64,000 nucleotides of DNA from Macrostomum hystrix (GCA_950097015.1 CATNEN010000025.1:3410001-3474000); one strand, 5' to 3'; numbered from the stretch's first letter, positions 2,387-11,300 are shown. Notes: a model not told the origin generated them from the letters alone. Translations and numbers: made by a program.

Positions 2387-5300
2387 CAGAGAATGGCAGA
2401 ACATCGTAAGAATCTGGAGACAGACCTCCGGCTGTCATTGTCCGGTCACCGGGGTTGCCACCGCCGACGAGGCCGCCTGGACTCAGCTCAGATACGAAGC
2501 CACTTTCAGCGCCCCAGCTGGAGGGCATGTCGATTGCTGCTGCTGCTGCTGCTGCCGCCGCTGCCTCCTGATGATGGCGCATGGCTTAATATGAATAATC
2601 TCTTTGACATGAAAATCGTTGCTTTGAAATGATTCACCAGTCTTAAAATCAAAGAATTTTTGTTCCTCTCTTAAAAGAATCCCAAACAAGCTATTTTAAT
2701 CGGGCTGACAAAATATGGAAGAATATTGCACGATTTTAGACGCACCGACTGAATAAGTGTCAGCTGGATAATTTTCCCAAAACAGCAGGGGGGTCTTTGC
2801 CTTAGAAGAGGCCCCATCCCTGCTCACTTGTGCCGTGTTATGCAATAATGCCCCGATCTTTCATTAGATAATAATCTTGGGCTATAATTCTCACTCGATC
2901 TATCTCGTGTCATTGAAAATAATGATTTATCATTCTGAGAGAGGGTTAGGCACTCGAGACTTAGCATTTCAGATTACTGAAGAAAGTGGACTAGATGAGA
3001 ACTGACATATGGCTAAAATTACAGGCAATTGTCCATGCTTAAATCCTAACATAAATACTGAACCACTAAACAAGCTATAGCTTCCTGCTTCGATACTAGC
3101 TAGCCATTACTTCCTGCTTCGATACTAGCTAGCCATTACTTCCTGCTTCGATACTAGCTAGCCATGGCTTCCAGCTTTGATACAATCTAACCGTAATTTT
3201 TCACTTCGATTCCAGCTAGCCATATCTTCCTGCTTCGATTCCAGCTAGCCATATCTTCCTGCTTCGATTCCAGCTAGCCATATTTTCCTGCTTCGATTAC
3301 AGCTAGCCATATCTTGCTGCTTCGATTCCAGCTAGCCATATTTTCCTGCTTCAATTCCAGCTAGCCATATTTTCCTGCTTCGATTACAGCTAGCCATATC
3401 TTGCTGCTTCGATTACAGCTAGCCATATCTTCCTGCTTCGATTCCAGCTAGCCATATTTTCCAGCTTCAATTCCAGCTAGCCATATTTTCCAGCTTCAAT
3501 TCCAGCTAGCCATATTTTCCTGCTTCGATTACAGCTAGCCATATTTTCCTGCTTCGATTACAGCTAGCCATATTTTCCTGCTTCGATTACAGCTAGCCAT
3601 ATTTTCCTGCTTCGATTACAGCTAGCCATATTTTCCTGCTTCGATTCCAGCTAGCCATATTTTCCAGCTTCGATTCCAGCTAGCCATATTTTCCTGCTCC
3701 GATTCCAGCTAGCCATATTTTCCTGCTTCGATTCCAGCTAGCCATATTTTCCAGCTTCGATTCCAGCTAGCCATATTTTCCTGCTTCGATTACAGCTAGC
3801 CATATTTTCCTGCTTCGATTACAGCTATCCAAATAGTCCTGCTTTGATTTCATCTAGATATCGATTCCTGCTTCGATTACAGCTAGCCATATTTTCCTGC
3901 TTCGATTACAGCTAGCCATATTTTCCTGCTTCGATTACAGCTAGCCATATTTTCCTGCTTCGATTACAGCTAGCCATATTTTCCTGCTTCGATTCCAGCT
4001 AGCCATATTTTCCAGCTTCGATTCCAGCTAGCCATATTTTCCTGCTCCGATTCCAGCTAGCCATATTTTCCTGCTTCGATTCCAGCTAGCCATATTTTCC
4101 AGCTTCGATTCCAGCTAGCCATATTTTCCTGCTTCGATTACAGCTAGCCATATTTTCCTGCTTCGATTACAGCTATCCAAATAGTCCTGCTTTGATTTCA
4201 TCTAGATATCGATTCCTGCTTCGATACCAGCTAGCCATATTTTCCTGCTTCAATTCCAGCTAGCCATATTTTCCTGCTTCAATTCCAGCTAGCCATATCT
4301 TGCTGCTTCGATTACAGCTATCCAAATAGTCCTGCTTTGATTTCATCTAGATATCGATTCCTGCTTCGATACCAGCTAGCCAAATCTTCCTGCTTCGATT
4401 CCAGCTAGCCATATCTTCCTGCTTCGATTACAGCTATCCAAATAGTCCTGCTTTGATTTTATCTAGACATTGCTTCCTCCTTCGATACCAGCTAGTCAAG
4501 GCTTCCTGCTTCGATACTAGCTAGTCTTTGCTTCGTACTTCGATAATAGCCAGGGATTCTTGCTGAGATTGATACGAACTGAAGCTCATGTTCTTACATG
4601 GATCCCCAGCACATCTATGTAACATATTTCACTGACCGAAACGCCACCTCTGAACGGCCGACCGGCGATTTGAAAATCTTCTTCAAGAGCGATCTTCAGT
4701 TCGAATAGCTCCAGATAGAGCTGACAGAATTTGGACCGCAGATTTTCGGCCACTTTAATGAGTTCTGCTACTCGCTCGTCCGGCTCGCATTCGTCTGTGA
4801 GGCGTTCCAACACTTTGAGCACAGAGTCCATCGCTTTCAGTCGATACTGGATTTCCTCTTCGCGATTCTAAAATAATGAGAAATGCGTTCTAGACTACTT
4901 AAAGTTGATAGTATCTATTTGCGTACATTAATTCCGTCGCATAAGGTTAGTACAATATTAGCCTTCAAAAAGTATTTTAGTTTAATTCGTTTCAATTTAT
5001 ATTGAAATGCTCGAATTTTTGCTTTGGCCAAGCGGTGGCCAAGGAATAGCTGATGCAAAGTGACACAATACAATGAAATACGATAGCCACTGAAAAGACT
5101 CGTTTATACTCGTAGCATTAGCCTTCCTGATTCATCCCAAATTCAATGCCCGTTGGGAATAACCACTGTCGAGTTGGTAAGCGCACAAAAATGTCCTCAA
5201 TGTGAGCGCAAGTAGATCCAAAAAAATTCCTAGCCCTTCTTCTCGTCCTCAGTTGATCGAGTCGTCGTAGACGTTGCCAACGCGCTAGTTTTGGTGATGA

Positions 5301-8300: not shown

Positions 8301-11300
8301 TAAATACGGTGAAGTTGAGCGCTATTATCGTCGAGCACTAGAGATCTACGCTACCAAGTTAGGCGAGGGCGATGTCAACGTAGCTAAGACCAAAAATAAT
8401 TTAGCCTCGGCCTTTCTAAAGCAAGGCAAATACGACAATGCCGCCCAGTTATATAAGGACGTCCTAACTAGGACGCTAGAACCGGACGAATCAGGCCGAA
8501 CAGTCTGGCAGGTGGCAGAGGAGCGCGAGGCGGCGGAATCTGCTAGCGGCGGCAAAGCTGCGGCAAGGAGTGGGGGTCAGTTGATGATAAACTGCCGATT
8601 GGCTAACGGAGCAGATGCTCAGACAGTGGCAACCACCGTGCGCAACATGGCCACGCTCTACAGGCGCCAGGGTCGCTACGCGGCCGCAGAAACAATGGAG
8701 GAGTTTCTTTACAAAAGCCTGCTTCAGCAGCAACAGCAGCAGCAGCAGCAGCAACAGCAGCATTTGCTATGGGCCAGTACCAGTAGTGGCGTCTTTAAAT
8801 GAAGCCGTGCAACTCAAACTCAATGAATAACAAGCAGTAACTTGACTCTGATAAAACAGAAACAAATTCAAAATCATTAAACATTAAACAATCTAATTAT
8901 TCTTCTTGCCTTTGATTATAGTTAAAGATGAAGACACAATACTAGTAGAGACTAAATTAGCAATTGGTTTCGAGTGCGCAATAGCATTGGATTAAAAACT
9001 AAATTGTTCCAACAATGTAGATTTGATGCAAAATGACTAAATCAAAATATGAAATATAAACTCGTCTATTTAGTACAACTTCTTCTAAATTATTAAAAGT
9101 AAAGACAAATGTGAATTTGCGTGAATTTTTTCAATACTTACTACTGATAGTAAAGCATTACAACATATAGCTTACCTGAACAGAATTCAATAATTCCGTC
9201 TTCTGATCAGATGTGAGCTGGGTTACATCGGCCGGCATTTCCAGCCTGCTCTCTGGGGAAATAATTTTTATAAATCGTGGCGTTAGTATAGTTCGGTTCA
9301 TAAGAACTATAATAAATATGATTTAGAAATATACTCAAAACTCACCAATTGCGGCGGTAAGCCATGCCTGCGATTCATGCAGATCAGATGCCAGATCTGA
9401 ATTAGGAAAATATTTAGCAAAGAAATGAGAAAAAATGACACCTAGCCTAGTTGAGCCAGATGTACAGCCGCTATCAAATACTCTGTACAGCTGTTCAGTC
9501 CGTGGACTGACGTACAGTCCGAAGCTCTAACCACAGGGCTTCAAATTTCTTTTCTCTCATATTGGAAGAGAACCAAATTTTACAATTAAAAAAACTACTA
9601 CTGTCCAATATGATTCACTAAGTAGTATAGAATGTTAAAATATAGAGCTGTTGGTTTCAAGTACTTAAAAACTAACTGCGACATTAAAAAAAACTAGCAA
9701 AATCTAGCTTAATACTGTACCTATAAACGAGGCGCGATAACACAATTTCCGCTTCAATCTACCTTTTTATCTTAAGACAAACTTTAGAATAGATGGAGAT
9801 AAAAGTACAGAGCTATAAAAATACTAACAGGACAGTTACATACGAAAACGTTAGTTTTTTATCTACTCTATACTAATAGTCATCGGCTGGTTTTCAAACC
9901 ATTAGAATCCAGCCATGTGAGTACCTCGAAGATAAACAAAAAAGGAGGCTAGCGTGTGCATTGAGTTATTCAAGCCTAAATCAAAGGTTTTTTAAAACAC
10001 GCTATGCAGTCTTGCTGATGAAGCTGGCACAACAAATTACAAGTACATATAACATGAGCTGGATGTGTGACACCAAAACAGAGAAGGGGTCATCTGGGGT
10101 CATTCAACTCCCTAAAACACACGCACAGACAGAAAAGGTGTCACTAAACAGTCCTGAGCATTGTTTAGCAGAGAGCGAGAGACAGACTGGGCGATGAGAT
10201 GAAAATGAAAATGAAATTGGATTACGCAACTATGAAGCCCGCTATTTGCTTGCTAAAATAAACTGTTGGCTGCATTACGTCAGACACTCCAGACTGATTT
10301 TACTTAATTCTCGTTAATATACTATAGCTAGGGTCTTTAGGAGGTATGCTTACAATTGAAGAGGAAATTAAACGCTCCAGAAGCGCCTATTTTCCGTCCT
10401 AAAAAACGCTTCCTTTTCTCCGTTAGAAGCGGGTCGGGTACAAACAATGACTCATCAGCATCAGCACACCATGAAGCTGGGAAAAAACCATTGAAAACAA
10501 TTACATTCATTAGAGAGACATCAACTCACCTTCAAATGAGAAAGGAAATGCTTTTTTAACAATAAATATAAAATGGCACAGATCAGGGCGATTTCATTCA
10601 GTCACTCACAGCACTCACAGCTATATCTTAGCCTGCTATACGAGCGTATCACCCATCAAAATTGACCCCACTAGAGCATGTGTTACCTCAGCATAGAAAA
10701 CTGTAAATTGCTTTACAAGTCATTTAAACTATATTAAATATCATTAAATAGCGAGAAGCTGTATCTGAGGATCTGTGAGGGTGGCTGCAGAATCTGAGGA
10801 TCTGTGAGAGTGGCTGCTGAATCTGAGGATCTGTGAGGGTGGCTGCAGAATCTGAGGATCTGTGAGAGTGGCTGCTGAATCTGAGGATCTGTGACAGTGG
10901 CTGCTGAATCTGAGGATCTGTGACAGTGGCTGCTGAATCTGAGGATCTGTGAGAGTGGCTGCTGAATCTGAGGATCTGTGAGAGTGGCTGCTGAATCTGA
11001 GGATCTGTGAGAGTGGCTGCTGAATCTGAGGATCTGTGAGAGTGGCTGCTGAATCTGAGGATCTGTGACAGTGGCTGCTGAATCTGAGGATCTGTGAGAG
11101 TGGCTGCTGAATCTGAGGATCTGTGAGGGTGGCTGCTGAATCTGAGGATCTGTGAGAGTGACTGCTGAATCTGAGGATCTGTGAGAGTGGCTGCTGAATC
11201 TGAGGATCTGTGAGAGTGGCTGCTGAATCTGAGGATCTGTGAGAGTGGCTGCTGAATCTGAGGATCTGTGAGGGTGGCTGCTGAATCTGAGGATCTGTGA

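Follow-up and report, generated by a model that had tools for sequence, protein, structure and literature searches.

What does it mean that a complete kinesin light chain (KLC) gene lies antisense within a single intron of another gene, and do the products of the two genes work together? The question is raised by a 64,000-nucleotide (nt) stretch of the Macrostomum hystrix genome (GCA_950097015.1, CATNEN010000025.1:3410001-3474000), which will be called the window. The outer gene is termed the host. A first-pass annotation of the window had placed the KLC gene in one host intron and likened the host to AKAP6, Klarsicht and related nuclear-envelope proteins. The nested pair is almost certainly real and old, both in its arrangement and in the conservation of that arrangement. 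The whole explanation favoured here, at a probability of about 0.55, is that the host encodes a divergent KASH-type kinesin-1 adaptor and that the nest is maintained neutrally. Nesting of genes is frequent, yet the guest is seldom a direct partner of its host. If the host is truly a nuclear-envelope receptor for kinesin-1, the cargo-binding subunit of the motor is encoded inside the gene of its own cargo adaptor and has been kept there through the duplication of the locus. If the host is unrelated to kinesin, the finding shrinks to an ordinary, well-conserved nested gene.

The Host Gene and Its KLC-Bearing Intron

The nearest relatives of the window proteins are found in Macrostomum lignano. 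Searches from the window were made exon by exon, and further searches used M. lignano database proteins. The M. lignano orthologue of the host exists in three near-identical copies, P0005 (826 amino acids, aa), P0007 (1268 aa), and P0008 (1266 aa), referred to together as host A. A paralogue with ~30% identity to host A, P0013 (1078 aa), will be called host B. Eight host exons have been mapped within the window:

21403-21224, minus strand: host exon 1, beginning with the ATG, 60 codons, 61% identical to P0005 residues 1-57, donor gttagt
19666-19484, minus strand: host exon 2, 61 codons, matched by tblastn to P0005 residues 56-114, with splice sites
17618-17442, minus strand: host exon 3, 59 codons, encoding helix A of spectrin-like repeat 1 in the structure model
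11887-11695, minus strand: host exon 4, 193 nt, coding for helices B and C of repeat 1
9396-9346, minus strand: host exon 5, 51 nt, coding for helix A of repeat 2, aligning to P0007 'DLECDLQEAQDWLDTAN'
9252-9176, minus strand: host exon 6, 77 nt, coding in repeat 2 for the loop and the first half of helix B, acceptor ...ccccag, donor gtaagc, ending in phase 0
9175-4868, minus strand: host intron 6, 4308 nt, donor gtaagc at 9175, acceptor ttttag at 4868, holding the entire KLC coding sequence (CDS)
4867-4637, minus strand: host exon 7, 77 codons, completing helix B of repeat 2 and adding its helix C, acceptor ...ttttag, donor gtcagt, starting in phase 0
2567-2387, minus strand: host exon 8, 181 nt, poly-alanine followed by an 11-residue conserved motif and DVLPFS, motifs common to the paralogue P0013

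The acceptors and donors of these exons are canonical and their phases mutually consistent. The exons tile residues 1-409 of P0005/P0007 collinearly at 61–71% identity, with no residues lost or doubled at the exon borders. Exon 8 ends in phase 1, so the gene extends beyond the left end of the window; it covers more than 19 kilobases (kb) within the window and ~42–46 kb in M. lignano. The exon anatomy given in the first-pass annotation was exact save for the 51-nt exon 5, which had been missed.

The complete KLC CDS (6570-8802) lies antisense within intron 6, and is thereby an intronic gene, as are its counterparts at the four M. lignano host loci described below. The earlier claim that the whole CDS occupies a single host intron is borne out: the intron runs exactly from 9175 to 4868, the flanking exons are in frame, and the orthologous gene models agree. 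The predicted M. hystrix junction 9176>4867 is supported by splice signals, reading frame, continuity of the fold, and orthology.

Exon 8 has features of its own. The 11-residue motif and a second motif, D(V/I)LPFSEDEYEKI, are near-invariant across the window, host A (P0007 360-420), and host B (P0013 105-185), and are bordered by low-complexity sequence that does not align. The acidic tyrosine motif could be another docking site for a motor or adaptor. A separate gene for exon 8, starting at the ATG at 2577, has been ruled out, as the acceptor at 2568 gives phase 0 and fits the orthologue.

The Kinesin Light Chain Gene

The guest gene is formed by three plus-strand exons:

6570-6824, plus strand: KLC exon 1, beginning with the ATG, 85 codons, part of the N-terminal coiled coil, donor gtagga, 80% identical by tblastn to the nested M. 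lignano KLC
7256-7930, plus strand: KLC exon 2, 225 codons, the heptad region and TPR1-3, matching PDB KLC1 chain 9pmb_C (E = 1e-102) and Pfam TPR_12 (E = 1.6e-32)
8230-8802, plus strand, stop included: KLC exon 3, 190 codons and the stop, TPR4-6 and a poly-glutamine tail, matching Pfam TPR_12 (E = 5e-19), 75% identical to the M. lignano KLC

Together the exons contain 500 codons (85 + 225 + 190), and all splice sites are canonical GT/AG. The PDB match of exon 2 spans residues 90-310 of human KLC1 and covers the heptad region and TPR1-3. The first 50 residues of the exon align with human KLC1 residues 90-140 (VRRL.QEN.WLR.ELA...), the heptad region that pairs with the kinesin heavy chain, and the TPR-only crystal chains of KLC1 and KLC2 are the next best PDB matches (E = 1e-85 to 1e-62). 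Exons 2 and 3 match both Pfam TPR_12 and TPR_10 and form a six-TPR block of the KLC type. An 18-residue segment of TPR2-3 is identical to human KLC1 and presumably carries the key asparagine of the groove that binds W-acidic peptides. Two ATTAAA signals are read at 8876-8888, ~290 nt short of host exon 6. They suggest that the KLC mRNA ends before this exon, and therefore no exon-exon antisense overlap between KLC and the host is evident. Judged by its sequence, the guest is a conventional kinesin light chain gene that has a start codon of its own, two introns, and probably a poly(A) signal.

The linker before the TPRs (7450-7560, exon 2) carries a different 11-residue stretch at the place where human KLC1 has the LFP-acidic sequence DDLFPNDEDD. 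The LFP motif of mammalian KLCs is autoinhibitory, and it may be absent or altered in the window KLC.

Conservation and Age of the Nest

Host exon 7 (77 aa) was searched with HMMER against 1.84 billion representative sequences. The search returned two significant proteins, both from M. lignano and with 58–62% identity (P0001, E = 3.5e-18, 62%), plus two weak matches to repeat proteins. With the M. lignano proteins P0002 and P0007 as queries, word searches gave M. lignano proteins alone, within a length range that excluded full-length KLCs (~500 aa).

Synteny in a related species had been proposed earlier as a check on the nest, and the M. lignano assembly (GCA_002269645.1) provides it. The assembly contains three loci for the orthologue copies (L001-L003) and one for the paralogue (L004). 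The three orthologous host copies span 42–46 kb, each with a 496-aa TPR gene on the opposite strand. This gene is a KLC (KLC-A), placed by tblastn in the gap that separates the exon-6 and exon-7 homologues at each of the three loci; the corresponding host junction in L001 is 21009>26386. The window KLC exons are 75–82% identical to the M. lignano KLC. The host B locus has a paralogous nest, in which an antisense 484-aa KLC paralogue (KLC-B), 47–75% identical to the window KLC exons, again sits between the exon-6 and exon-7 homologues. The exon-6 homologue in L004 has a phase-0 donor after the same glutamine as in the window, and a 3' acceptor in front. The window species is, on these comparisons, a macrostomid related to, yet distinct from, M. 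lignano.

In a maximum-likelihood tree of the KLC exon-3 block, the window KLC groups with KLC-A (support 100/99), and KLC-B joins this pair (98/96). The resulting macrostomid group excludes the KLCs of cestodes, molluscs, nematodes, rotifers, and vertebrates, and the window KLC stands among the animal KLCs, apart from bacterial TPR proteins. Since a KLC paralogue occupies the homologous intron of the paralogous host, and given the order of branches in the tree, we infer that the nest is older than a duplication of the whole locus in the macrostomid lineage, which is itself older than the split between the window species and M. lignano. The nesting most likely arose once in the macrostomid lineage and would have been copied when the entire locus was duplicated.

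The intron pattern of KLC-B differs from that of the window gene. In L004 (4869-8464, minus strand), no intron interrupts the junction of window exons 1 and 2 (8425-7802), and additional introns break up the exon-2 region. By this comparison, divergence between the two nested KLCs extends to structure as well as sequence. A 14-residue part of the TPR2-3 groove segment is unchanged between the window KLC and KLC-B.

The KLC locus of the trematode Calicophoron (L005) shows no called gene on the opposite strand and no host-like tblastn match, which is a weak check, since the locus has only a fragmentary KLC model and the host evolves quickly. Literature searches returned nothing on a nested KLC gene, on the M. 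lignano gene identifiers, or on Macrostomum KASH proteins.

Fold of the Host N-Terminus

The AlphaFold2 model of P0007 residues 115-350 (predicted local distance difference test score, pLDDT, 83; predicted template modelling score, pTM, 0.71) consists of two three-helix bundles in tandem. The helices of the first bundle are at model positions 16-38, 44-78, and 80-106, and those of the second at 114-134, 148-185, and 190-227. In a Foldseek search against the PDB, tandem spectrin repeats make up 12 of the 13 top matches, the remaining one being a designed helical bundle. The tandem repeats come from alpha- and beta-spectrin, plectin, alpha-actinin, and nesprin-2G (probability 0.99–1.0, E = 2.5e-3 to 5e-2); the TM-score is only ~0.4 because the angle between the repeats differs. 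As modelled, the host carries two spectrin-like repeats at its N-terminus.

The KLC-bearing intron maps inside helix B of the second bundle, to a stretch with pLDDT ~90. The first-pass annotation had described the intron as interrupting one spectrin-like repeat in frame, and the model agrees with this description. The exons on either side of the intron contribute to one fold, which speaks strongly against two separate genes.

The C-Terminus and the Identity of the Host

The full-length M. lignano orthologues show two spectrin-like repeats, a long middle region of low complexity or disorder, a C-terminal helical region, a single transmembrane helix, and a short terminal peptide. The sole strongly hydrophobic 19-residue windows are at residues 1223-1253 of P0007 and 1004-1038 of P0013, and AlphaFold2 models a helix in both places. 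The tail after the transmembrane helix has ~15–18 residues in P0007/P0008 and ~40 in P0013, and both paralogues have the pattern ADW...LVS...PNGAP[Y/F]-COOH. KASH peptides have been defined by a transmembrane domain, followed by 9–40 residues to the C-terminus and, in animals, the four-residue terminal pattern PPPX (PMC4050730). The Macrostomum proteins agree with the first two points of this definition and depart from the third.

A second conserved feature is a W-acidic island with the motifs DQLWD and L(Q/SL)WE.DQ, 27–37 residues apart, which is 47% identical between the paralogues. The motifs are DLDQLWDHY (W761) and DDSHLQWEADQ (W788) in P0007, and DVDQLWDYS (W657) and DSQLSLWEIDQ (W694) in P0013. 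Within ±8 residues, all four are surrounded by 4–5 acidic residues and no more than one basic residue, and the island is located in an acidic segment of low pLDDT that is predicted to be disordered. The KASH proteins nesprin-1, nesprin-2, nesprin-4, and UNC-83 bind the TPRs of KLC through LEWD/EWD motifs (PMC12581424). By analogy, kinesin-1 would be recruited when DQLWD and L-x-WE-x-DQ, the two W-acidic-like motifs of the host, dock into the TPR groove of KLC.

From these features we consider, at somewhat better than even odds, that the most likely identity of the host is a divergent KASH-type kinesin-1 adaptor. It would be a fast-evolving adaptor for cargo at the outer nuclear membrane, similar to nesprin-4, UNC-83, or Klarsicht; its location at the nuclear envelope and its binding to KLC are predicted from sequence features. 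The nuclear-envelope role of the Klarsicht/UNC-83/nesprin type proposed in the first-pass annotation is plausible in view of the tail anchor, the KASH-like peptide, and the two W-acidic-like motifs, whereas a specific relation to AKAP6 or Klarsicht is unsupported by any Pfam family or sequence relative. The same annotation had proposed a look to the left of the window for a transmembrane helix with a KASH end or an (L/E)EWD motif; in the orthologues the helix and the short tail are present, the PPPX end is absent, and the W motifs are LEWD-like but deviant.

The main alternative is that the host has no connection to kinesin or to the complex that links nucleoskeleton and cytoskeleton (LINC). 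It would then be a lineage-specific, tail-anchored helical protein of another membrane (endoplasmic reticulum, Golgi, mitochondria, or plasma membrane), its nesting would be coincidental, and neither its W[DE] motifs nor its NGAP[YF] end would be related to KLC and SUN. Several observations favour this alternative and weigh against a KASH-type adaptor. No Pfam family was found for the host exons or for any M. lignano host protein; the Spectrin model has no match at E ≤ 1 in either set, and the KASH model has no match at E ≤ 10 in the C-terminal pieces or the whole M. lignano proteins. No sequence relative from beyond Macrostomum came up in HMMER with host exon 7 or in word searches with two M. 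lignano host proteins. When exon 7 and both C-terminal tails were compared with PDB sequences, only chance matches resulted, and none linked the tails to KASH peptides. The tails do not match a terminal PPPX, ending instead in ...PNGAPY or ...PNGAPF, where NG-x-P resembles NGPPPX without the triple proline. None of the four W motifs has an acidic residue at -1 as in the textbook LEWD. The Foldseek E-values (2.5e-3 and weaker) and TM-score are modest. Finally, the C-terminal ~850 residues of the window host lie to the left of the window, and the anchor and the W-acidic island are read from the M. lignano orthologues only.

On the other hand, small KASH adaptors are built in this very combination of spectrin-like repeats, a disordered acidic island bearing a pair of W[DE] motifs, helical repeats, a transmembrane helix, and a C-terminal peptide of very few residues. 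Few features are kept between the paralogues, which are otherwise ~30% identical or unalignable, and the peptide end and the two W motifs belong to these; little else is shared between host A and host B beyond the tail and the island. Short and atypical ends are also known in KASH proteins. The luminal peptides range from 10 to 32 residues, with only 18 in UNC-83 (PMC6527376), and plant WIPs have termini other than PPPX (PMC6527376, PMC4050730). A host outside the LINC complex is a serious possibility, but the less likely one.

The name "KASH domain-containing" that UniProt assigns automatically to some of the M. lignano proteins has been given no weight. It is borne by N-terminal fragments lacking the tail, and other host proteins are named PDZ, GAR, or bZIP (P0001, P0005, P0009, P0011, P0012).

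Comparison with Known Systems

As a KASH-type adaptor, the host would most resemble UNC-83 of Caenorhabditis elegans and nesprin-4. Like them, it has a medium-sized cytoplasmic part that is mostly helical or disordered, W-acidic-like motifs (W-acidic motifs bind the KLC TPRs in UNC-83 and nesprin-4), a single C-terminal transmembrane helix, and poor conservation outside the motifs. The peptide at the extreme C-terminus, luminal in UNC-83 and nesprin-4, is very short in all of them (18 residues in UNC-83, ~15–18 in host A). The host differs from both in its NGAPY/NGAPF tail in place of PPPX, in the missing Pfam KASH match, in W motifs of the form QLWD and LQWE/SLWE rather than (L)EWD, and in being known from sequence alone.

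The Drosophila KASH protein Klarsicht is linked to microtubule motors, and the searches made here found no sequence similarity between it and the host. AKAP6 (mAKAP) contains a few spectrin repeats and is held at the nuclear envelope via nesprin-1alpha (PMC8523159). The host likewise has few spectrin repeats, two in the model, and no sequence similarity to AKAP6 was found in the same searches. AKAP6 has, to our knowledge, no transmembrane anchor of its own. A PKA-anchoring helix was not seen in the host, although no search aimed at one was made.

The gene arrangement can be compared with two known cases. In the cholinergic locus, VAChT lies within the first intron of ChAT; the two genes serve one pathway, and the arrangement is conserved across animals. 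They are on the same strand and share a promoter and 5' exons, which gives a clear mechanism of co-regulation, whereas KLC and its host are antisense and share no exons. The other case is 2mit inside timeless2 of Drosophila, a complete protein-coding gene on the opposite strand within one intron (PMC3786989). The present case differs from the Drosophila nested genes in that KLC is a plausible direct binding partner of the host product, and in that there are two paralogous nests, both of which have the guest in the homologous intron. In the human genome, KLC1 shares a chromosome arm with SYNE3, and KLC3 with KASH5 and SYNE4; the flatworm nest may be an extreme form of an older KLC-KASH linkage.

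Maintenance of the Nest

The preferred explanation for the persistence of the nest is neutral, and we hold this part of the explanation to be very probable. The nest would persist mainly since an intronic gene cannot leave without harming its host, and not from functional need. An intronic gene is copied with its host and is hardly able to leave, and therefore conservation and co-duplication are the default expectation. Nesting itself is also frequent: ~6% of Drosophila genes are intronic (PMC3786989), an intron of an MSH6-like gene in the window holds plus-strand open reading frames (ORFs), and retrotransposon genes are located in host introns of M. lignano. In addition, the locus came from a scan that favoured striking coincidences. 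The neutral account nevertheless leaves a coincidence unexplained, which counts against it: a plausible direct binding partner lies in the intron of its partner, and both copies of both genes have survived the duplication.

A functional role of the nesting, through co-regulation or transcriptional interference, is the idea of the first-pass annotation. Antisense transcription through KLC, or a common chromatin domain, would couple the dosage of the motor adaptor to that of the nuclear-envelope receptor, and selection would hold the pair together. The pair recurs within one and the same host intron at the four M. lignano loci as well as in the window species, both hosts and both KLCs are intact after the duplication, and the two products are plausible direct partners (PMC12581424). 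However, a nested pair should be conserved and duplicated together even without selection, and KLC is broadly needed for many cargoes, so that a tie to one adaptor would be of no obvious use. The likely KLC poly(A) signals also precede host exon 6, leaving no evident exon-exon antisense overlap, and no opposite-strand gene is called at the trematode KLC locus, although that check is weak. Functional coupling through the nesting is considered unlikely.

A related proposal is that KLC and the KASH-type adaptor form a co-inherited module of two genes that was duplicated as a unit, with matched A-A and B-B specificities and with the antisense nesting fixing the relative expression of the two. Each adaptor paralogue would have retained a KLC paralogue of its own in its intron. 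This is considered very unlikely.

That there is no nest at all, but two minus-strand genes flanking KLC (one ending at 9252-9176 and the other starting at 4867-4637) that gene predictors have fused, is hardly credible: one older M. lignano model (P0001) does skip exon 6 and the annotated host B model does begin at a methionine inside the exon-6 homologue, but exon 6 lacks a stop codon and closes with a strong donor, exon 7 follows a strong acceptor without any start context, the two exons are halves of one helix in one three-helix bundle at pLDDT ~90, three independent NCBI gene models join them, and the "start" exon of host B has a 3' acceptor in front of it on a contig that ends ~2.8 kb upstream, so that the model is probably truncated.

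Both transgenesis and RNA interference are available in M. lignano, which brings three questions within reach. These are whether the nesting enforces co-expression or mutual exclusion, whether the duplicated adaptor-KLC pairs have co-evolved, and how far a KASH end may drift from PPPX without loss of function. The result also adds two candidate LINC-complex proteins for flatworms that homology searches miss.

Other Features of the Window and Loci

The remaining features of the window are as follows:

328-1188, 3082-4524, 10758-11648, 12959-17308, and 17744-18487: minisatellite arrays with periods of 25, 29, 29, 24, and 21/43, respectively, and up to 182 copies
24792-25421, minus strand: ubiquitin-conjugating enzyme ORF, single exon, 209 aa, Pfam UQ_con E = 6e-37, ~3.4 kb upstream of host exon 1 and on the same strand
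26034-26332: ACT microsatellite, 100 copies
27800-51139, minus strand: MSH6-like gene of ~23 kb with PWWP, MutS_I, MutS_III, and MutS_V domains
58878-59261, plus strand: DUF2340 ORF, single exon, 127 aa, E = 1e-38

The minisatellites fill the host introns, often beginning no more than ~100–200 nt from an exon, and are open in several frames, which produces long spurious ORFs. The long open frames at 10734-11663 and 12959-18551 have been rejected as exons for this reason. An exact database look-up of the 209-aa UQ_con ORF returned no record, nor did look-ups of P0001, P0002, and a Mytilus KLC, and an Rfam search over the whole window returned no match.

An intron of ~13.5 kb in the MSH6-like gene (28822-42336) contains two plus-strand ORFs of 170 and 244 aa (31617-33088), with no Pfam family. 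They possibly represent a second nested gene in the window.

In M. lignano, an upstream intron of two host copies contains retrotransposon pol genes with reverse transcriptase, RNase H, and integrase (L002 13709-15049, L003 11125-14832). P0006, one of the older M. lignano gene models, is chimeric and joins a retroelement to exons of the host.

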